This document shows, in pieces, positions 13,641 to 26,017 of a stretch of DNA of 64,000 nucleotides. The stretch's first letter is position 1. Each line of letters starts with the position of its first letter. A model generated the notes under the pieces. The model was not told the DNA's origin. It ran no database searches and saw only the letters and a list, made by a program, of their open reading frames with translations. Position numbers and translations under genes: made by a program. The DNA is from Podarcis bocagei (lineage: Eukaryota). The DNA lies in the NCBI GenBank assembly GCA_964188305.1, contig OZ076885.1; one strand, given 5' to 3'.

Positions 13641-14079
13641 TTCATGTGGAGTTCTTCAACTTGCATATCAAAATCTTTCTGTCCAAAATATTGGAAGGAG
13701 ATATTTCTGCAATATTTCAAGACCTTTTTGACGGGAGGAGAGAGATAAAAGTTTATTGATCACAACATACTGGGTAGTTTGTCACCGTGCGGAAATATGC
13801 GTGCCTGAGAAGTGCTGTTCTATCCACATACTTGTGAGTAAACATGGCTGGACTGCAGCCTTGATTCAAAAACAGCAGCATGCCTCAAAACACTAGGATG
13901 CTTGCACCAGTGGAAGCTGAACTTGTGAACATGCCCTTTAGACTCCTGAAGGACTTCGAGCCTTCTCTTGGCAGGGATGCAGAAAGCTTCACTTACGTGT
14001 TTCGGACTTGTTAAAACCACAGTGGGGGCTGGGGGAAAGCTGGATTCCTTTGACTTAAAGGTGGGAGGCTGGCAACGTC

Positions 14080-14960
14080 GGAGCCTGAGTTGGGCGCTGC
14101 CCCTTTAAGAGCTCCTCTTGCCTTGATCTTCCTGCTGGGAGCTGGGAAGGTGCTGCCGCGGCGAGGAGGAGGCGGCGAGGCGAGGCCAGAGTTGGCCCTC
14201 GGAGATCAGACCCGGGATTGAGGAAGGCAGGATCCCACCCTCTCTGCGGCTGCTGCGAGCAACGGTATGGCGTCCCCCTGGGGCACTCGGAGTCCTCTTC
14301 AGGCCAGGCGAGGGGATCTTCCTCAAGCCAACCACGCGGCGCCCTAAGGAGTAAGTAGCCAAGGCGCGGACTCGGCGCTTCTGCCTGGCGCAACCGATCC
14401 CGCCATGGGAGCGCAAGTCTCGAGCGCAAGGGGGATCTGAAGTGCTTGGCGAGCGGATCGAGCCTGGGATCGCCGCGGGATCCGGGCCGCCACCTGTTGC
14501 TCGGAGCGCACAGCCAGCCTCGCCGCGCGTCTGGGAGGGGGCGGCGGCGGCGGCGTCTCCTGCTCTCCAAGCGGCGCTGCGCCTCCAGTTGCGCCTCTCC
14601 GGGAAAATGGAGAGCGACGGACTTTCCAGCGCGGACCAGAAGCTGATCCGAGAGAGCTGGGAGAAAGTGAACAGCAGCCCCATCGAGCACGGCTTGGTCT
14701 TGTTTACCAGGTAAGGGGGAGAAGGAAGAGGGGCAGGCTGGGCTTGGTTGGAGGGAGCACGTGCGAGGCCAGATGCCGGAGGAAGATTGTAAGGGGGAAT
14801 CGAGGATCTGCCCGGGAGAATCAAAGAGCCAGGTGTGTCTCCACGACGCCTGAAGTGGGGACGGTCCTTTGCAAAGCAGACCATCTTGACCCAACTTGGT
14901 TTCACAGCTTGAAAGACTCCGGTGAGAAACTTTGTTCCACCTTCTCCGCCACGATCTTTA
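14080..14960. promoter_or_regulatory. NGB: CpG island / NGB promoter and 5' UTR; TATA-like TTTAAGA at ~14104; CACGTG E-box at 14758
   Basis: Visibly CpG- and GC-rich compared with the CpG-depleted flanks; surrounds the start codon. TSS position is not determined. Confidence 0.8.
14607..14710 (+). CDS. NGB: NGB coding exon 1 (104 nt)
   Basis: AAAATGG Kozak start; [18 protein letters not shown]...VLFTR; donor AG|GTAAGG, phase 2. Confidence 0.96.
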
Positions 14961-17900
14961 CGCTCCATATTCCCAGAGTCTCCATGCTTAGATTTGTTGG
15001 TGGTGAATCTCTGCCGGGAACGAGCAAGCTCCTTCTAGCAGGGGTTTGGTTCCTCTTCACACATCACAGGGGTGGGACGTCTGAAGTGGTGGCGGGGAAG
15101 CGGGCAGATCGTGTGTATTGGTTATGCGAGTGTAGACCTGCTTGGTTATTTGCAGGTGATTTATATATGACACAGGTGACAGACTTGCTTCCAACATGGA
15201 AGTGTTTTCCTGTGCAGCCAAAGTGTAATAGGTGAAGTAAAGTGCCTCTCTTTCTAAATTAGCTTTATATATATATAAAAAAACCACATTTATATATCAC
15301 TGTTCCATGTTGGTGCCTAACATGAGCGCTTTCTAGGCTTGAGAAGTCTACCTGCAGGTCACATATACACCTCTGTGCTGGGGCACTTCTTGTCCCAGAA
15401 GTGCAGGGCTGGTTTCTGTTAGTTTCTAATGAGGGAGAGGGGCCCCATCTTCTCTAACCCCCCACTATAAATAAAAATTTAAACCACAAACAAAAATACA
15501 TATATATATGGGGGGAATGAGCTGTATACAATAAAATTAATAGAAGACAAAAGCCTAGACAATATTTAACATTATTAGAAAGGATACTGAAGTCTACATT
15601 TAATATAAATAAAACAACATTGAATTAGGTTAATTAAATAATTTCTCTTTCTTACATCCCCCTCCCCCCGAGACACCATGACTTGACTTGAGCTAGAGCT
15701 TGTTGCTAACACTGTATTTGCTTTCATTTCCCTGGAGTACCCCTAGAATATGCGAAGTAATGAGTGCCACTGAGCATGTGCAGAGCGCCTTTTAATAAAC
15801 ACCAGTCAGTCACAACAAACCCATGTAAATATGTGATGGATAGTTAAGGTGGCAATTCTGTATGAGCTTACCTGAATGTAAGTCCCAGACACATATAGGC
15901 TTGTGCTGCAAGGCTTCTGGGTCAGAAAGAGGGGACTCCTAGACAGGCTTGAGTTCCAGCAGGACTTTTTCATTTCAGAAAATGAAGCGTTAGATGAGTC
16001 CAGACAGAGCAAGGAGCTTGTGCAGTCCTGTGAAGGCTTACTTTGGCTTAAGCTTGGGCAACATAGCACCTCTATGGGTTTGAAGGGTGCAAGTATTGAT
16101 GTGATTTTCATATGAAACTCCATGAGGATTAAAGGCCAGCAAGCTGTTTAAAAAGACAGGCCAAGAACACAGGAAGAAGGTTGTGTGAGCTCTAAGTCTT
16201 CCCTTTGATATCTTCTTGTCGTTGTGGCAGATGAGAGTTTTCTCTCAATCAGGGAGTAGCTCCACAGTCCTCAGCTCTGCAGAGTGTATCAGAGCGGCTT
16301 CCTAATTGCATGTGACATGGCAATCACGGGAGCCGAGGCCAGGCCTGGCCCTTGGGGAGAGGCTTGATTCATTCCGGGATCAGTCCCAGGGCAGAGGAAA
16401 TGGTGCATGCGAGAGAACAGCTGAGTGCCCGGGTGCATGCCATTAACCCTGAAGCTGAGGAGTACAGAGCTGGGAGACGCAGATGGGACAAACGCTTTGA
16501 GCCTCTGGAAGGCCGTGCTTGGTTTTATAGGAAGCAACAAACTTTATTCCTCCATTCACAGAGGAGTTTGTGCAGAGGCTGCTCTGCAGCCAATGTTCAC
16601 CCACCTGCTCCCAGCCACTCTTTAACTTTCCATTGTATAGACAGGAAAATCGAGGCAGGTAAGCGTGGCGTTTGCTCAACATGGACTAAGGAGAGTCTAT
16701 AGTGTGAAGAATGGGATTTGGAACCTAGGAAGCTGCCCTATACAAGTGACAGATCTTGGCATCTCAAATTTCAGGGGTGCCCTTTGCAATGCCAAAATCC
16801 GGTGTCCCCTCGCCTTCTGTTAGATCTCATAGTTGCAGTGTCCCAGAAGCTTTGCACCTGGTGTGACCGACCTGTTGTGCTCCCCTAGATCTGCCTTTCA
16901 TACAAGGTCAGATCATTTGTGTCCTTGTCGACACGTGGCTGGCAGTGGCTGTCCAGCATCTTGAGCAGAGGTCTCTCACATCACCTCCTATCTGATCCTT
17001 TGTTCTTTTTAATTGCAGACATAATAAATTGAACCTCCAGCCTTTAGCATGCTCTACCCCTGAGCTATGATCCCTTCTCCTACACAGAGAACAGAACTGT
17101 TTATCTGCTGCTTGTGTGTGGTGGATGGCAGCCTGGCCATTGAAATTCCACTTGCTTTGTCTGACTGTTAGATTTTAGTTTCTAAGAATCAAAGTCCAAC
17201 CAGCGGCAGAGCTTCAAGCGCCAGCACCGGGGTGGGGGGCGGAGAGCAGGTGGGGGTGGGGCTGGCATGCGTCCTGCGGGCGTGGTGCTCAGCGCGGGCA
17301 GGGGGGGAGCCACGATGGCACCCCACCAGTATTTCACTGCCGGGGGCAAGGTGCTCCCCCCACACTCCTCTTCCTCTGCCAGTGAGTCCAACACAGTCAA
17401 CTCCAGCTCCCCATGTAGAATATGGATGGGTGGAGCTGGTACTATAAAATGGGCAATGCAATGTAGGTAAGGTATCCTTTAAAGTGGTGTGCAAACAGCT
17501 TCTGGGAATTCTCTGCTCTGTTTATAGGAGATTTCTCCTGCGGGAAGATAAATTATTCTTTAGTAATTTTTCAGGGGTGGGGCTGACTATTGGCAGTGAG
17601 GGATGGAAGCAAAGCTTCTTTCTTTTCTGCCAAGGGTGTGTGTGTGTTGATACTACAAATGGCTGCAGGATCTGTGTTGGTCGAGTCACCATTTGCCTTT
17701 TCCACAATGGATTGTTTTCTCAGTAAAAAATGCCTTATGGGAAACTGAATAGCTGTATTACTCCTCCATTAATTAATAAACACACAACTTTGTTTCTCTG
17801 GGCCAAATGCAGTAAAACCCACTCAATGAATACGAAGACGAAATTATCAGAGGATGCTTAAAAGTTTGGAAGGGATGCACAAAGCTTCAGAAGGAGTAGA

Positions 17901-20900
17901 CAAATGAGAAAGTGACAGGTTAGCAGGGCTGAATTGTGTTCACATGGGTTCTTCAACAGTTCAAAGGTAAAATTGTTAACTAAGGTATGTAATTTAAAAT
18001 CAGCAAACTTTTCCAGCAAATTGCTGAAATGGTCATTGTAGCACCTGTATTTTCAGCAGGAACCAGGAAATTTGAACCCTTCCAGACAATTCTATACTGT
18101 ATTGTGCAATATGATGGAAATCGTTATTAAGACTAGTTTATCTATTGAATATGTAACACAACAAAACTCGTGGAGGAAGAGTTGGCTTGGTGTCTCCAAA
18201 GAGATGTCTTGCTTCACTAACCCCTTTAAGTGTGTTGAGAGTATCAACAAAAATGTAGAGGGGGTGGTTAGCCGAACATTGCAAACATAGGCTTTGTGTT
18301 TGTTTTTAAGAGAGCTTTTTAGCAAACACTCCTTTCTGTGGAAAGTCAAGAGTCAGAAATGCACCCTCTTATGCATTCAAACATCCTCTAGTTAAAATCC
18401 AGAAAGCTGTGGTTAGGAATACAGGCATTTTTCATCATAGAGGAAAGCAAATTATATGGAGTGAGGCTGGTACTGTTTAGATTATTTAATAATTATCTAG
18501 AGTCAGTGACAGAGCTACCTTGCGCATGACACAAAGTTATTAATAGGATGTTACAACTGCAATGAGCATAGATGTGTTGCTGATTGTTTAAAAAACAGAT
18601 AAAGTGACAAAGTACAAGCCTACCAGTGACCATTGTCTATGATGGCCTAAACAGACTGTCTACATTCCGTGGCGTAGCTGCTAAGAGTTTGAGCGAGGAA
18701 CGCTCTGGTTCAAATCTCATCTTTTTTACTTACTTCATAACTCTCAGCCTCCCTTCTGCAGTATGTGGAGAATACTGGCCTACCCTACTGATTGTTGTAA
18801 ATGTTGTTGAGGTAGGCCGGTATTCTCCTCATGCTGACAGGTAGTATTATGAAGTCTTTGTTGCAATTTTTTATTTTGCTGCAAACTGCTTTATAGCCCC
18901 TGTCTGATGGACGACACCAGTCTCTTGCATTACCTTGACTTTGAAGGATTGCGAGTTTTGAGTTCCTGCATGGAGCAAACCATTCTTTGAGATACCATTA
19001 CATGTTTTATACCACTGTATAAAATTGTTCAGCGAATAGCAGAGAGCAGAATTCAGGCCGGTATATGGAACGATATTGCAACAGATTCTCGTTCATCCTT
19101 ATTAGTCAGGAGAGATGTGTACCATATAAATAGGAAAAAAAAGGGTTCCTGTCAATCTAGGAGGTGAATTACCAGAGAGATGAGTTTAGGAAGGCAGTCA
19201 GGGTTGAAAGGGCACCAGGGATGACATGAATGTGTGAAATGCAACCTGGCAATGAAAAGCTGAGGTGGATTTTGGGCTGTGTCGGGGAATGAAGAAGGGA
19301 GAGTCTAATCTCAATGCAGTCTGGAAGTGAAGACCCTTTGAATGTTGTGTTAAGAGACTGTGGTTAGTGGGTATTTTGTCTGTGTATGTTGGTGGGAGGC
19401 GCAGAAGGGCAGAACAGATCCTACGGAAGGGAGTTTGGAAACAGACAACAAAACAAGTCATTGCTACGAGAAGAACGGAGGATGTTTTCAACACATCTTA
19501 TGCTCTTTTGCGCAAGGGTGGTAACTTACAGCGGCTGTGGTGGAGTAAATGGTGTGTGTGCTAAACTCAGCTTTTTTTTCAGAGAAAAGCTTGGTGCTGG
19601 CGATCTTCCAGTGCTCTTGCAAAAGGCTTATGATGTTCTCAGATTTTTCTGCTATCCAGGTCTTTGTCACTTCACACATCTTTCTCTCTCTGTGTGTCTT
19701 TCTGTCTCTGCCTCTCTAAAACAGCCAGTCTTCGACCCCCTATTATTGCTACGATCTAGCAGTGTGATGCTACAGCACGATAAATGGAGATTGCTGTTTA
19801 TACCAGGAATGAATGGACCCTTCCCCATTTCTTAAACACATATTTGAGTGGGACGTTTCTACATGCTCAGTTGAGAAACTGGCTTCAGCCCCACTCCAAG
19901 CATAAGAGCACCATGAGATGAGCAAGGGGAAAGGGGCGGTGGCAGACCTCCATTTGCACTGCCTTCCCCTCCTGGACAGGCTGTGCTCGCAGGGAGAGCT
20001 CAAGTGACTGGGAAGTAGTAATGAAACAATTAAAGCATTTTGAAATTTGTTTAAAACAAGTCCAATACAGATGGAGATTGGGAAAGATTGCTACCTGAAA
20101 TGCTTGTTGATAGGGGAACATTTTCAGCAGGCAACAGAGATGGTGCCTGAGAGTTGTGCTGGGTCTCCATTTTTCTTTCCCAGAAACCAACTGTAAAGGG
20201 ACAGGGGAAGTTGTACCGAGAGAAGAAAAATGCCCTGGGTGGTAATCAACTAAGTTTTACTCTGTGTATACCTATTGGAATTCATGAATATTACTAAAGC
20301 CTATTCATTTCAGTAGGTCTACTTTTGGAATAAAACCTAGTTGAGTACCACTCCTTGTCCTCTGTTGTACCTGGTTTGTTTCCCTGAAGGCAGGCTGGGC
20401 ATGAGGGGAGGCTGTACAAGAGATGAGGAATACATCCTTTCCTCCCCTGCCATCAGCCTTGTCCTGTGACTGGCTTGCTTTCTTGGGCCTCCCCAGAGGA
20501 TGGGAAAGAGAGATGGGATGGGATGTCTGCCCGATTTGTATGGAGGCCAAATAATTGTTGGGTTGATGTCTTTCAGGCTTTTTGATCTGGACCCTGGCCT
20601 CTTGCCCCTTTTCCAGTACAACTGCAGGAAGTTCTCTACTCCTCAGGAGTGCCTCTCATCACCTGAGTTCCTGGAACACATTAGAAAGGTGAGAGGTGCA
20701 AAGGAGTCATTCTGGTAATTGTCTTCAACTATAGCAAAGGCTATGCTGGCAAGTGGCAGTGGGGTATCCTGCTTAGCGTGTTTGGCTAGGGCCTGGGAGG
20801 GCTGGGTTCAAATCCCTCCTCTTCCATGAAGCTCTTGGGGTGAAAGGAGCTTGTTGAGTAAATCTGGGCCAGTTGTTCTCTCTCAGATGGACCTACCTTG

Positions 20901-23900
20901 CAGGGGATCAAATGGTATACAGGTGACCTTGCACATTTTCCTGAGATGCTTGGAAGAAGTTTGGTGTAAAAACTGTAGTCAACAAATGCAGCTTCAAAAC
21001 TCTCTTGCTCTGCCCCAACAGCCCTTTGTGTATCCTCTTCACCAAGTCAGTAACACAAAGTCAGTAAAATTATAATAAGCTATTATTTATTCTACACTGC
21101 CAGGGAATGGGGAAATATTAATTGGTGCCTGGTGCTTCCCAGCTGAACTATTTAAAATTTTAAAAGATGATGCTGTTAAGGTGCTACACTCAATATGCCA
21201 GCAAATTTGGAAAACTCAGCAGTGGCCAGAGGATTGGAGAAGATCAGTCTACATCCCAATCCCAGAGAAGGGCAGTGTCAAAGAATGCTCTAACTACCGC
21301 ACAATTGCACTCATTTCACACGCTAGCAAGGTTATGCTTAAAATTCTACAAGGCAGGCTTAAGCAGTATGTGGACCGAGAACTCCCAGAAGTGCAAGCTG
21401 GATTTCGAAGGGGCAGAGGAACCAGAGACCAAATTGCAAACATGCACTGGATTATGGAGAAAGCTAGAGAGTTCCAGAAATACATCTACTTCTGCTTCAT
21501 TGACTATGCAAAAGCCTTTGACTGTGTCGACTACAGCAAACTATGGCAAGTTCTTAAAGAAATGGGAGTGCCTGATCACCTCATCTGTCTCCTGAGAAAT
21601 CTCTATGTGGGACAAGAAGCTACAGTTAGAACTGGATATGGAACAACTGATTGGTTCAAAATTGGGAAAGGAGTATGGCAAGGCTGTATATTGTCTCCCT
21701 GCTTATTTAACTTAGATGCAGAATTCATCATGCGAAAGGCTTGGCTGGATGAATCCCAAGCCGGAATTAAGATCGCCGGAAGAAATATCAACAACCTCAG
21801 ATATGCAGATGACACAACCTTGATGTCAGAAAGTGAGGAGGAATTAAAGAACCTATTAATGAGGGTGAAAGAGGAGAGCGCAAAATATGGTCTTGAAGCT
21901 CAACATCAAAAAAACGAAGATCATGGCCACTGGTCCCATCACCTCCTGGCAAATAGAAGGGGAAGAAATGGAGGCGGTGAGAGATTTTACTTTTTGGGGC
22001 TCCATGATCACTGCAGATGGTGACAGCAGTCACGAAATTAAAAGACGCCTGCTCCTTGGGAGAAAGGCGATGGGAAACCTAGACAGCATCTTAAAAAGCA
22101 GAGACATCACCTTGCCAACAAAGGTCTGTATAGTTAAAGCCATGCTTTTCCCAGTAGTGATGTATGGAAGTGAGAGCTGGACCATAAAGAAGGCTGATCA
22201 CCGAAGAATTGATGCTTTTGAATTATGGTGCTGGAGGAGACTCTTGAGAGTCCCATGGACTGCAAGAAGATCAAACGCATCCATTCTTAAGGAAATCAGC
22301 CCTGAGTGGTCACTGGAAGGACAGATCATGAAGCTGAGGCTCCAATACTTTGGCCACCTCATGAGAAGAGAAGACTCCCTGGAAAAGACCCTGATGTTGG
22401 GAAAGATTGAGGGCACAAGGAGAAGGGGACGACAGAGGACAAGATGGTTGGACAGTGTTCTCGAAGCCGCAAACATGAGTCTGACCAAACTGCGGGAGGC
22501 AGTGGAAGATAGGAGTGCCTGGCATGCTCTGGTCCATGGGGTCACGAAGAGTCGGACACAACTAAACAACTAAACAACAACAGTGCTTCCCATGTGTTTT
22601 GATGATCTGAACTACTTGTATGACATGAAGAATGTTGTCTAAGAGGTACCTGTAAAAAAATTACCTGGGGTGGAAAGTCGTGTGCATGAATCTATCCTGA
22701 TTACTTTTCTGCGTGCAGAAAATGCATTAAAAAAACTAATATAAATCTATTAACTGTATTAGATTAGGAATGAGTTTAATCACATTTAAATTAGATTTAG
22801 CTTAGCAGAGCAAGCAGGAAGGACAAGTATGAGCTTAACTCCAAGGGTGTGTTAAGAAAATATTGAGACAAGGGACTCTACAGGGGTATAAGCAACCTTT
22901 CTTTTCTGACTGAGTTTTGACCTAGCTGTGGGCTGGTTTTAATAGAATGTTTTCTGCTGCATGCCTGGTGTTTGGTGTTTGATTATGACATGTTTTTAAT
23001 TTGTTTTACTTTGTCCCTTTTGATGAATTTTCTTTTCATTAGCTGCATTGGACAATGCTTTGTTGGAAAGTCAGGAAAGAAATACAAATATAGAAATAAA
23101 ATAAATGAGGTGGTTTGATAGGGTGTTTAGATTGTCAGATTAAAAGAGAACAAGTTTAGTCTAGCTCTCCCCCACCCCCAAGGATGGCTAGTCAGGTTCT
23201 ATTTATTTTTCAGCATTTTTGTCCTGCCTTTCTGCAAAATAGGGTGGCAGAGTACAAACTGTGAAGAGATGAGCTAAAATTTAGTTGAAACAAACAGTCT
23301 GTTGGACAAGCAAATAAGAGGATGATGTTGGTGCAGAAACCAGTAGCAGTCAAAGATCAGCCTCAGAAAACACTATCTTTAAAAAGCCTGGTGGAGAAGG
23401 AAAGTCTTAGCTGCTTTGTTGAAAAGCAAGCAGCCATGGGGCCAGGTGAGCCTCTTTTGGCAGAGTGTTCAACTGTCTGTATCCCAACACTGAAAAGGCC
23501 CTGTCCCTTAGAGCCACCTGCCAGGCTTCAGACTCAAGTAGGCCAGGAGACATCCAACAAGAGCCTCAGTAGATCCATGCCCTCCAACATTTCTCTGATG
23601 AAAATAGGGATGCCCTAAGGAAAAGCAGGATCAAATCAGAAACCGAGACAGCTTCTGTAAATCCAGGACTGCCCCTGAAAAATAGGGACACTTGGAGGGT
23701 CTGTAGATGATCATAAAGGTTAGGCATGTGGGTGGAAAGAATTCTCCAGATGCTCTAGTAACAGGTCAACTGGGCCTTTAAAAGTTAAAACGAACACTTA
23801 GGATTGAGCCCAGAAATGAATTGGTAGTTGCTGTACTGAAGCCAGGTCTTGTAAACATTCTGGCAGCTGCATTCAGGACCAGTCAAAGCATATGATCTAC

Positions 23901-26017
23901 AAAGGCTGAGCCACATGGAGCACATTAGAGTAATCCAATCTGGAAGTGACCGCGGCATGAATAGCTGGCTACTCCTGGCTTTTCAAGGGAAGGATGCAGC
24001 TGACCCACATGCTGAAAAAAGGTACTTCCAGCCACAAGATCATCCAGTTGCCAGGCTGGGTCTTGCGAGTACTCCCAAGCTGTGGCTGACTTTTAAAGGA
24101 GTGCAAGTATGTGCAAAAGAAACAGAACACCAGCGCTTCTAACACCAAACCCTCAACTACCCATTGCCTCTATTTTGTCTGGATTAAACACCAGCTACTT
24201 CACCCTCATCTGCTCCAAAACTGATTTCCTTAAGGACTTTTACAGGCAGGGCACAGCAGAACCACCCCTTCTTGCTTGTTCCATTAATTGGTAATCAGAT
24301 CTATACTCTCTGGGTACGGAAGCTCCATTTTTAGCTCTCATAGCTAATTGCCAGTGGTACTTTCCCTATTGAATTTGGCTACAACATCACCGATGGGCAC
24401 GCACCTATTAGGAAGTAAATCCCATTCATATCAAGGGGGCTTGTTACCAAGGAAATCAGCTTTAGTTATATGGCTGTGATTTCCCCTCTGCCAAAATCAA
24501 AACTCATGCAGGTGGGAAGAATGGCAGAGCAGCCAGGAGGGTTGAATCTAAAATTGGGTAGTAAGGTTTCTTGTAGCACCAGTCTGCTGGATAATGTGTC
24601 ACTGTGATGTGTCCCTTGAGAGTCATGCATGACAACTGCATGGACAACCATGTCAATCTGTTTCGACAGGCCACACTGGCTGTTGTAGCTTATCAACATG
24701 TGTAAACGCTACTAGAAGAGGTAAGTGTATGGGAGATCAACACACAGCTGATTTGGGTTTGGTTTCCAGGTTTTTCCTTGCTTTCTGCATAAGGGTTTTG
24801 TAACATTTGCTGGAGGCCCTAAATGGCAGGATTGGTGTAATAGACAGATATAAATGGTATTTAAATACAGATTTTCTTCAAGCATGCCCTTTCATCTTGA
24901 CCTGAGCTCTGAGGCTTATGGAGATATCCAGAACAAGCCTTTCAGAGTCTCCTATAACATTTGCAGAAGGCTTTTAGAGTGCCTTTATTTCCATAAGGAC
25001 ACACCAGATTGTCCTGTTTGTCGTTCTGTCTGCTTGGTAGGTAATGCTGGTAATAGATGCAGCCGTGACTCATTTGGAGAACTTGCAGTGCCTGGAAGAA
25101 TACCTTGCCAACCTGGGTAAGAAACACCAGGCAGTTGGTGTGAAGGTGGAGTCTTTTTCGGTAAGGAGCCTTTTCGTTTTGAGATGTATCCGTGGCACTG
25201 TTGACTTGCTTTGAATTCTTCCCTCAGCTTTCCAGGTTTGTGTTGCAGGAAGGGACATGTTGGGAAATCAGTACAGATTGAGGAGGAGGAACAAGGTCAT
25301 GGAGGGTTTTGAGAGGACAAAAAACTTGCTCAGGATCCCAGAGTGGATGGGAAACCAGTGGAGAGAGTTAAGAGGGGAGAGTCACATGGTCTGAATAAGT
25401 CACAAAATAAGTGAGCAGACTTCTGAGCTGTTTTAGACCTGGGTGGATGAAGGAGAGGGGTGCATGGCAGAAGGAAAGTTGGGGTGACAGAAGAGCTACG
25501 ACGTCTGCAGTTGAGATAGTCGTAAGTCCTGGAGGAGATTTACAGACTGGATGGGATTAGCTTTCTGAAAAATTCATTAGCCATTACTCAGCTCAGCCTC
25601 CAGCTCCAAACAAAACTTGCAAGATCCTCTGAGGCAGAGAAGTAAAAAGCAAGGTAGTCTGTTGTTAGGCAAACGGGGGATAAATAATGGTTGACAGCGC
25701 CAGTAAGAGCCAGATTGAGAGGATTACTTGGAACTTGGAGGGTGTGTGCCTCCACCATCACTCTGAAAGTAAAGTTCCATTTTTTAGATAGTAGAAAATC
25801 ACCCCCACCCCTTCCTTAAGAGCTGCTTCTTTTTGAATGCTGATTCTGCTGTCTCCTGTTTGATTTGCAGGCTGTGGGCGAATCCTTGCTGTACATGCTG
25901 GAAAAATGCCACGGCCCCGCTTTCAATGTGAATGTGCGTGAGGCCTGGACCAAGCTGTACAGCATTGTGGTAAAAGCCATGAGCTGCGGCTGGGATGTTC
26001 CCAGAAAAGTGGAATAA
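14607..26017 (+). CDS. NGB: Neuroglobin, complete spliced CDS join(14607-14710,20577-20688,25041-25160,25871-26017), 160 aa
   Basis: Spliced translation [160 protein letters not shown]. Has distal His (H69), proximal His (H101), CD1 Phe and the Ngb-type three-intron pattern, all GT-AG. Convergent with TMEM63C as in other amniotes. Confidence 0.98.
17201..17384. mobile_element. hAT MITE in NGB intron 1
   Basis: TIR CAGCGGCAGAG/CTCTGCCAGTG; perfect TSD AGTCCAAC (17193-17200, 17385-17392). Confidence 0.9.
20577..20688 (+). CDS. NGB: NGB coding exon 2 (112 nt)
   Basis: tttcag|G acceptor; [16 protein letters not shown]...EFLEHIRK; donor AAG|GTGAGA. Confidence 0.98.
21142..22582 (+). mobile_element. 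5'-truncated RTE-BovB LINE (RT domain and C-terminus) in NGB intron 2
   Basis: ORFs 21181-22023 and 21887-22573 translate to BovB RT ([36 protein letters not shown] at 21802-21813, [17 protein letters not shown]); one frameshift near 21894; (CAA)n tail; TSD GTGCTTCCCA at 21132-21141 and 22583-22592. Confidence 0.97.
25041..25160 (+). CDS. NGB: NGB coding exon 3 (120 nt)
   Basis: ggtag| acceptor; VMLVIDAAV...[15 protein letters not shown]; donor TCG|GTAAGG; not in the ORF track. Confidence 0.98.
25871..26017 (+). CDS. NGB: NGB coding exon 4 (147 nt incl. TAA)
   Basis: ttgcag| acceptor; [13 protein letters not shown]...[13 protein letters not shown]. Confidence 0.98.

Follow-up and report, generated by a model that had tools for sequence, protein, structure and literature searches.

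The neuroglobin locus

The window, a stretch of 64,000 nucleotides from Podarcis bocagei (contig OZ076885.1 of assembly GCA_964188305.1), carries a lacertid neuroglobin (Ngb) gene, which was modelled by tblastn with squamate neuroglobins. The features of the gene and its leader are as follows:

14142–14606, plus strand: 5′ leader of the neuroglobin mRNA, minimum extent (at least about 465 nt), from the contigs of sequence runs X15 and X29
14267–14347, plus strand: first upstream ORF (uORF1), 26 codons, MASPWGTRSPLQARRGDLPQANHAAP*, strong start context
14405–14440, plus strand: second upstream ORF (uORF2), ATG GGA GCG CAA GTC TCG AGC GCA AGG GGG ATC TGA, read as MGAQVSSARGI*
14430–14434, plus strand: G5 run (GGGGG), the place of a proposed one-base error or ribosomal slip
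14477–14502, plus strand: conserved non-coding block GGGATCCGGGCCGCCACCTGTTGCTC with the E-box CACCTG, from alignment
14527–14566, plus strand: (GGC)n repeat of the leader, variable in length; the RNA contigs break here, and record 3 of X15 has 9 gap letters
14607–14710, plus strand: neuroglobin exon 1, coding part, from M1 to the first two bases of codon R35
20577–20688, plus strand: neuroglobin exon 2, from tblastn; the RNA contig ends at 14711 run on into its letters
25041–25160, plus strand: neuroglobin exon 3, from tblastn
25871–26017, plus strand: neuroglobin exon 4 with the stop codon, from tblastn

The four exons total 160 codons, and 159 of the 160 residues are the same as in the neuroglobin of Podarcis muralis (G41 instead of D41); exon 1 shares an identity of 69–82% with that of other squamates. 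The donor GT of exon 1 stands at 14711–14712, where the G at 14711 fits either side of the joint. The leader region forms a GC-rich island (64–67% GC, CpG-island-like). Two long minus-strand ORFs over this island (14055–14894 and 14105–14968) belong to no Pfam family; an antisense gene was considered here and rejected, the two ORFs being taken as open frames of GC-rich sequence.

Further along the gene, the segment 17125–17464 matches the alternative first exon of the Zootoca vivipara neuroglobin isoform X1 (P0019). In the window its frame is interrupted by a stop (LLDFSF*ESKSN), on account of which the predicted X1-type isoform may not be intact in this species. Intron 2 contains retroelement ORFs (21181–22573), the first of which carries RVT_1 (E = 1e-33).

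An upstream open reading frame with a Met-Gly start

The ATG of uORF2 sits in GCCATGG (wider context CCGCCATGG), with G at both −3 and +4, and the ORF runs for 11 codons to a TGA at 14438–14440, 166 nt short of the main neuroglobin ATG at 14607. It is read in frame 2, as against frame 0 for the globin, and the globin frame holds 84 open codons upstream of its ATG, back to a TAA at 14352–14354. Removal of one base would join the two frames into a 67-codon extension onto the globin (202 nt minus 1), and the first residues of the peptide, MGAQVSS, fit the N-myristoyltransferase consensus (M-G-x-x-x-S). From these letters an earlier note on this DNA had proposed that a membrane-anchored long neuroglobin might be hidden one base away. 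What it reported of the sequence was confirmed on re-reading, namely the GCCATGG at 14405, the reading MGAQVSSARGI*, the TGA at 14438–14440, the G5 run at 14430–14434, and a globin frame free of stops from 14355 to the main ATG; the arithmetic of a 67-aa extension upon the loss of one G is also sound and gives one continuous ORF.

The level expected by chance was estimated from 5,000 random sequences matched to the leader in length and dinucleotide composition. An upstream ATG (uATG) followed by G-x-x-x-[ST] occurred in 3.9% of them and one fitting the looser PROSITE-type myristoylation pattern in 10%, while the main frame was open for at least 84 codons in 27%. The pattern is thus uncommon but only mildly unusual, and is unremarkable for one gene picked from a genome scan. 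The real leader contains two uATGs against the 3.9 expected from the random leaders.

Transcription of the leader and constancy of the G run

The stretch is contained in 20 public runs from about ten studies, four of which were compared over 13900–14900. X1 (organism A) is a near-identical DNA contig, possibly from the window's own sample, that spans the whole region with one difference, at 14197. The contigs of X15 (organism G) cover 14142–14526 and 14512–14711, the overlap at 14512–14526 joining the leader to exon 1, and those of X29 (organism I) cover 14186–14453 and 14567–14711, the X29 sequence diverging after 14453. The raw-read RNA run X35 provided a single read, confined to exon 1. Although the RNA origin of X15 and X29 was initially only guessed, both are spliced transcript assemblies, because their contigs stop matching at 14711 and continue into the letters of exon 2 (CTTTTTGAT...), and because their depth is zero in the intron (14716–14900) and upstream of 14138.

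The spliced contigs of X15 and X29 cover 14405, which places the uORF2 start in the mRNA; uORF2 thus has an AUG and an in-frame stop in the transcribed leader, upstream of the main AUG. The transcription start is bounded only, at or before about 14142–14186, as the contigs show neither strand nor true 5′ ends. No substitution or indel is listed within 14405–14440 in X1, X15 or X29, and differences flanking uORF2 are listed (14399, 14446 and 14448). Judged from these unchanged letters, the G5 run, the ATG and the TGA can be taken as real and as shared by the window and no fewer than three other lacertid organisms. The suggestion that a run of another length might be seen in other individuals was not borne out, G5 being kept in the contigs of all three organisms with no G4 seen, and a sequencing error as the source of G5 is essentially excluded.

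The leader varies in length among lacertids: organism G has a 24-bp deletion at 14363 (14363–14386) and differs by 9 nt in the (GGC)n repeat. From their exon 2 letters, organism G would resemble Podarcis (D41) and organism I would resemble Zootoca (G41, S44). At the 5′ limit of the RNA contigs, the window segment 14135–14160 (CTGGGAGCTGGGAAGGTGCTGCCGC) is kept in Python, L001 and Sphaerodactylus, and possibly indicates where the core promoter or the transcription start lies.

Start-stops in the neuroglobin leaders of other reptiles

A search with the in-frame leader and exon 1 (14355–14711) returned no match at E ≤ 0.001. With the exon 1 part only and a lax E-value, the Python bivittatus neuroglobin and two Logan contig ORFs were found, and the Python protein then yielded 177 relatives. 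The loci compared were those of Anolis, Python (two assemblies), Pogona, Sceloporus, Paroedura, Sphaerodactylus, Dermochelys, Crocodylus, Lagopus and mouse, together with the Logan contigs L001 and L002; every upstream ATG was listed for each locus, and the leaders were aligned.

In eight other reptiles (two geckos, Anolis, Pogona, Python, the squamate L001, a sea turtle and a crocodile), the position corresponding to 14405 reads ATG-TGA, that is, a start codon followed directly by a stop, and in lacertids it reads ATG-GGA. The surrounding block has the form CCCAGNG-ATGTGA-GYGCAAAGTCYYGAGC, also given as CCCAGNG-ATGTGA-NNNCAAAGTCYYGAGC. In the aligned block the start-stops lie at the following distances before the main ATG:

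Anolis: ATG-TGA, 161 nt
L001 (squamate contig): ATG-TGA, 180 nt
Paroedura: ATG-TGA, 182 nt
Python: ATG-TGA, 192 nt
Pogona: ATG-TGA, 205 nt
Sphaerodactylus: ATG-TGA, 210 nt
Crocodylus: ATG-TGA, 226 nt
Dermochelys: ATG-TGA, 232 nt

The start-stop is conserved above its surroundings over a range from geckos to crocodile and turtle, the ATGTGA columns being the best kept of the ten-species alignment (mean column identity 51%).

Geckos stand outside the group of lacertids, iguanians and snakes, and turtle and crocodile stand outside the squamates. That all of these outgroups have TGA points to TGA as the ancestral state and to GGA as derived in lacertids by a T-to-G change, so that, on the alignment, the glycine codon of "MG" was once a stop; the letters are ATG-GGA-GCG in lacertids versus ATG-TGA-GCG in Sphaerodactylus. 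The residues that follow, AQVSS, are a reading of the conserved non-coding block CAAAGTCYYGAGC after the old start-stop. This block has an indel of 1–2 nt between gecko and lacertid and is therefore not conserved as codons.

The stop was also lost elsewhere. In Sceloporus undulatus (L007 2322) an independent loss (ATGGGCAGC) likewise gave "MG", in a frame that extends over the main ATG in another phase, and Sceloporus is the only orthologue that also has ATG-GG. The start-stop of Hemicordylus has apparently lost its stop as well. The ATG is absent at the block in the one bird compared (Lagopus), and no start-stop is evident at a comparable place in the mouse. The constraint on the start-stop is therefore not absolute.

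Coding potential of the leader

Taken modulo 3, the spacing between uATG and main ATG is 1, 0, 0, 2, 1, 2, 2, 0, 1 and 1 in the ten species with a uATG, and the three frames are about equally open in 14 orthologous leaders. Even between the two assemblies of one Python species the leader is open for 23 versus 62 codons. Within lacertids, the substitutions 14446 T>C and 14448 G>C would replace Leu with Pro and Gly with Arg in the proposed extension. Because the phases vary and the blocks carry indels between species, the region between the uATG and the main ATG reads as non-coding sequence. A conserved N-terminal extension from a non-AUG start was also considered and rejected, since frames 1 and 2 of the 14 leaders are at least as open as frame 0 and the phases of the blocks vary.

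None of the 177 neuroglobin relatives (88–280 aa) has an exon-1 extension starting with MG; the longer entries among them arise where another first exon replaces exon 1 or where the reading runs into an intron. The database neuroglobins of lacertids (Podarcis muralis, P. lilfordi and Zootoca isoform X2) are 160 aa long. One entry, XP_053139927.1 of Hemicordylus capensis (P0125), is annotated with 231 aa and has a 71-residue extension, MQSCEENQ..., obtained by reading the leader in frame. This extension is 39% identical to the frame-0 leader of the window over 56 residues with gaps and shows no match to that of L001, and the entry is probably an over-long gene model. In L001 (995–1282) and L002 (63–362), a second ATG right after the ATG-TGA is in frame with neuroglobin and opens extensions of 58 and 64 codons (MRAPGEK...), which differ from each other by frame-shifting indels that cancel out. 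On these alignments the extensions of Hemicordylus, L001 and L002 look like non-coding sequence that happens to be open. The first residues of the Hemicordylus extension resemble the block after the start-stop with its TGA deleted.

Other conserved elements of the leader

Python, L001, Pogona, two geckos, turtle and crocodile share the start of uORF1, (A/G)CAACATGGC. The end of uORF1 (GCNCCCTAA) and its length are near constant in squamates (26, 26, 26, 27, 24 and 18 codons) despite a leader rich in indels. The peptide is unconserved, all six of the changes in organism I altering a residue.

No part of the leader is better conserved across squamates, turtle and crocodile than the block GGATCNGG-GCCACCTGT (14477–14502), which stands in all three phases relative to the main ATG. 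This block is likely to serve as a cis-regulatory site in the promoter or leader of neuroglobin.

A predicted translational role for uORF2

In our assessment, uORF2 is quite probably a lacertid derivative of a conserved start-stop in the neuroglobin leader, with a predicted role in dampening or gating translation, and masks no membrane-anchored neuroglobin. Under this explanation, uORF2 would descend from the two-codon ATG-TGA that stands 161–232 nt before the neuroglobin ATG across squamates, a turtle and a crocodile, and a T-to-G change in lacertids would have turned its TGA into GGA, letting the frame run 11 codons to the next TGA. Scanning ribosomes would start at the strong-context AUG at 14405, make a peptide of 11 residues and terminate 166 nt before the main AUG, which only re-initiating or leaky-scanning ribosomes would then reach, to make the ordinary soluble protein of 160 residues. 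In this way uORF2 would lower or gate neuroglobin synthesis, and it probably dampens neuroglobin translation. Of the readings offered by the earlier note, that of a regulatory uORF with a chance motif is the one supported, uORF2 being present in transcribed RNA and its glycine codon deriving from a former stop (TGA to GGA). The motif resembling an N-myristoylation site appears to be incidental and is unjoined to the globin. An 11-residue product would be released before it could leave the ribosomal tunnel, and co-translational myristoylation of the uORF2 peptide is therefore unlikely.

The conserved letters might alternatively act as DNA, the ATGTGA block and the E-box block being promoter-proximal transcription-factor sites, with the ATG and the stop incidental and the lacertid uORF having no translational role of its own. 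Several observations fit such sites: conservation extends past the hexamer, the island character is that of a CpG-rich region (64–67% GC) and the block adjoins the strongly conserved CACCTG E-box, no conserved RNA structure was found around the start-stop (the folding energy of the leader being no better than that of shuffles, z = 0.15), and repeated losses affected the stop or the ATG. However, the region is part of the mature spliced RNA of two lacertids, so that scanning ribosomes would meet an AUG with G at −3 and +4 regardless, the six letters ATGTGA are the best-kept columns of the block, and the shortage of uATGs (two against 3.9 expected) fits selection on uATG content. We regard this alternative as unlikely, and even if right it is no rescue for a long isoform.

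It is very improbable that programmed recoding gives uORF2 a further role as a lacertid novelty, with a +1 frameshift at the G run or at an antizyme-like AUC-UGA-A producing a minor myristoylated long neuroglobin. From either site a +1 shift would indeed lead into the globin frame, which is open to 14607, and the letters of uORF2 are identical in three lacertid organisms. Against this, no stimulatory or conserved RNA structure was found, both substitutions just downstream (14446 and 14448) change a residue and X29 diverges after 14453, the phases vary among species, an equally open frame occurs in 27% of random leaders, and the extension shares only 39% identity with the in-frame leader of Hemicordylus, in contrast to about 70–83% for exon 1 among squamates. 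Any lacertid-only role beyond a translational brake, whether through such a shift (at AUC-UGA-A or the G run) or through a free 11-residue peptide that is myristoylated and active, is accordingly given very little credence.

Equally little weight is given to uORF2 as the decayed start of an ancestral acylated, membrane-bound neuroglobin, which the earlier note had listed among its versions. N-acylated globins do exist, and globin X is both myristoylated and palmitoylated (PMC3176823). The glycine codon, however, is derived, with TGA in geckos, iguanians and snakes, and turtle and crocodile, so that the ancestral state was ATG-TGA, and the uATG keeps no constant phase with the main ATG. The alignment that might have shown a conserved in-frame MGxxxS instead shows ATG-TGA in eight species of squamates, turtle and crocodile, and no ATG in the one bird.

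The long isoform itself, in which one G too many or a polymorphic run conceals a true product of 227 aa, N-myristoylated, has in its favour the arithmetic that turns the loss of one base into one ORF and the fit of MGAQVSS to the N-myristoyltransferase consensus, and is nearly untenable in the face of a G5 run and TGA unchanged in three more data sets from three organisms (DNA contig A and RNA contigs G and I), an ancestral start-stop, and database lacertid neuroglobins of 160 aa.

Returning to uORF2 as a derived start-stop, it is an ordinary uORF with an unusual origin. The presence of a start-stop and of a second uORF (14267) in the neuroglobin leader, both conserved across reptile lineages, is modestly new; the reptile lineages concerned split roughly 250–280 million years ago. 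Remodelling of the start-stop has recurred: lacertids, Sceloporus, the one bird compared and probably Hemicordylus each show it. The control of neuroglobin expression is still debated. A full-text literature search found no paper linking neuroglobin to uORFs, and translational gating of neuroglobin, if true, would therefore be a new angle on the control of its expression. The locus also illustrates two ways in which sequence may mislead: a change of TGA to GGA right after an AUG yields a good-looking myristoylation motif by accident, and annotation by the longest ORF gives rise to spurious long entries, among them the 231-aa neuroglobin of Hemicordylus. The claim of a hidden membrane-anchored neuroglobin fails, and a chase in the wet laboratory is spared.

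Comparison with known systems

The long neuroglobins of the databases (Hemicordylus, L001 and L002) share the leader discussed here, and in them the globin frame is entered from an upstream ATG near the old start-stop. They differ in starting with MQSCEE... or MRAPGEK... and not with MG, and have little or nothing in common with each other or with the window.

The N-acylated, membrane-bound globin X, which the earlier note cited correctly (PMC3176823), shares with the uORF2 peptide the M-G-x-x-x-S start, a good motif of the N-myristoyltransferase type. In globin X, however, the MG is in frame and part of the globin, whereas that of the window is stopped by a TGA after 11 codons, lies in another frame and derives from a stop codon. 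Nor is an MG start conserved in the orthologues, eight of which have ATG-TGA at this place and only one of which, Sceloporus, has ATG-GG, of independent origin and out of frame.

The leader of the window is also comparable to those of the GCN4/ATF4 type, in which two or more short regulatory uORFs permit re-initiation: it is long and GC-rich, and its two short uORFs have strong start contexts and both end before the main AUG. The spacers here measure 57 nt from the end of uORF1 to uORF2 and 166 nt from the end of uORF2 to the main AUG. Unlike in that type, neither uORF of the window overlaps the main ORF, stress-dependence in the Ngb leader is hypothetical, and the uORF1 peptide is unconserved within lacertids.

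There is also a likeness to the start-stop elements, a described class of 5′UTR elements reported to be repressive, to be conserved along with five bases upstream and to occur in over 1,400 human genes (PMC13338717); the main text of that study makes no mention of neuroglobin. The eight reptile orthologues have exactly ATG-TGA in the neuroglobin leader, preceded by a purine at −3, and the conservation takes in the adjoining upstream bases too, as reported for human start-stops. The window differs in that the stop is gone (ATG-GGA), and on this comparison of sequences its element would be a derivative of a start-stop and not a member of the class, an ordinary uORF of 11 codons with an elongation step.
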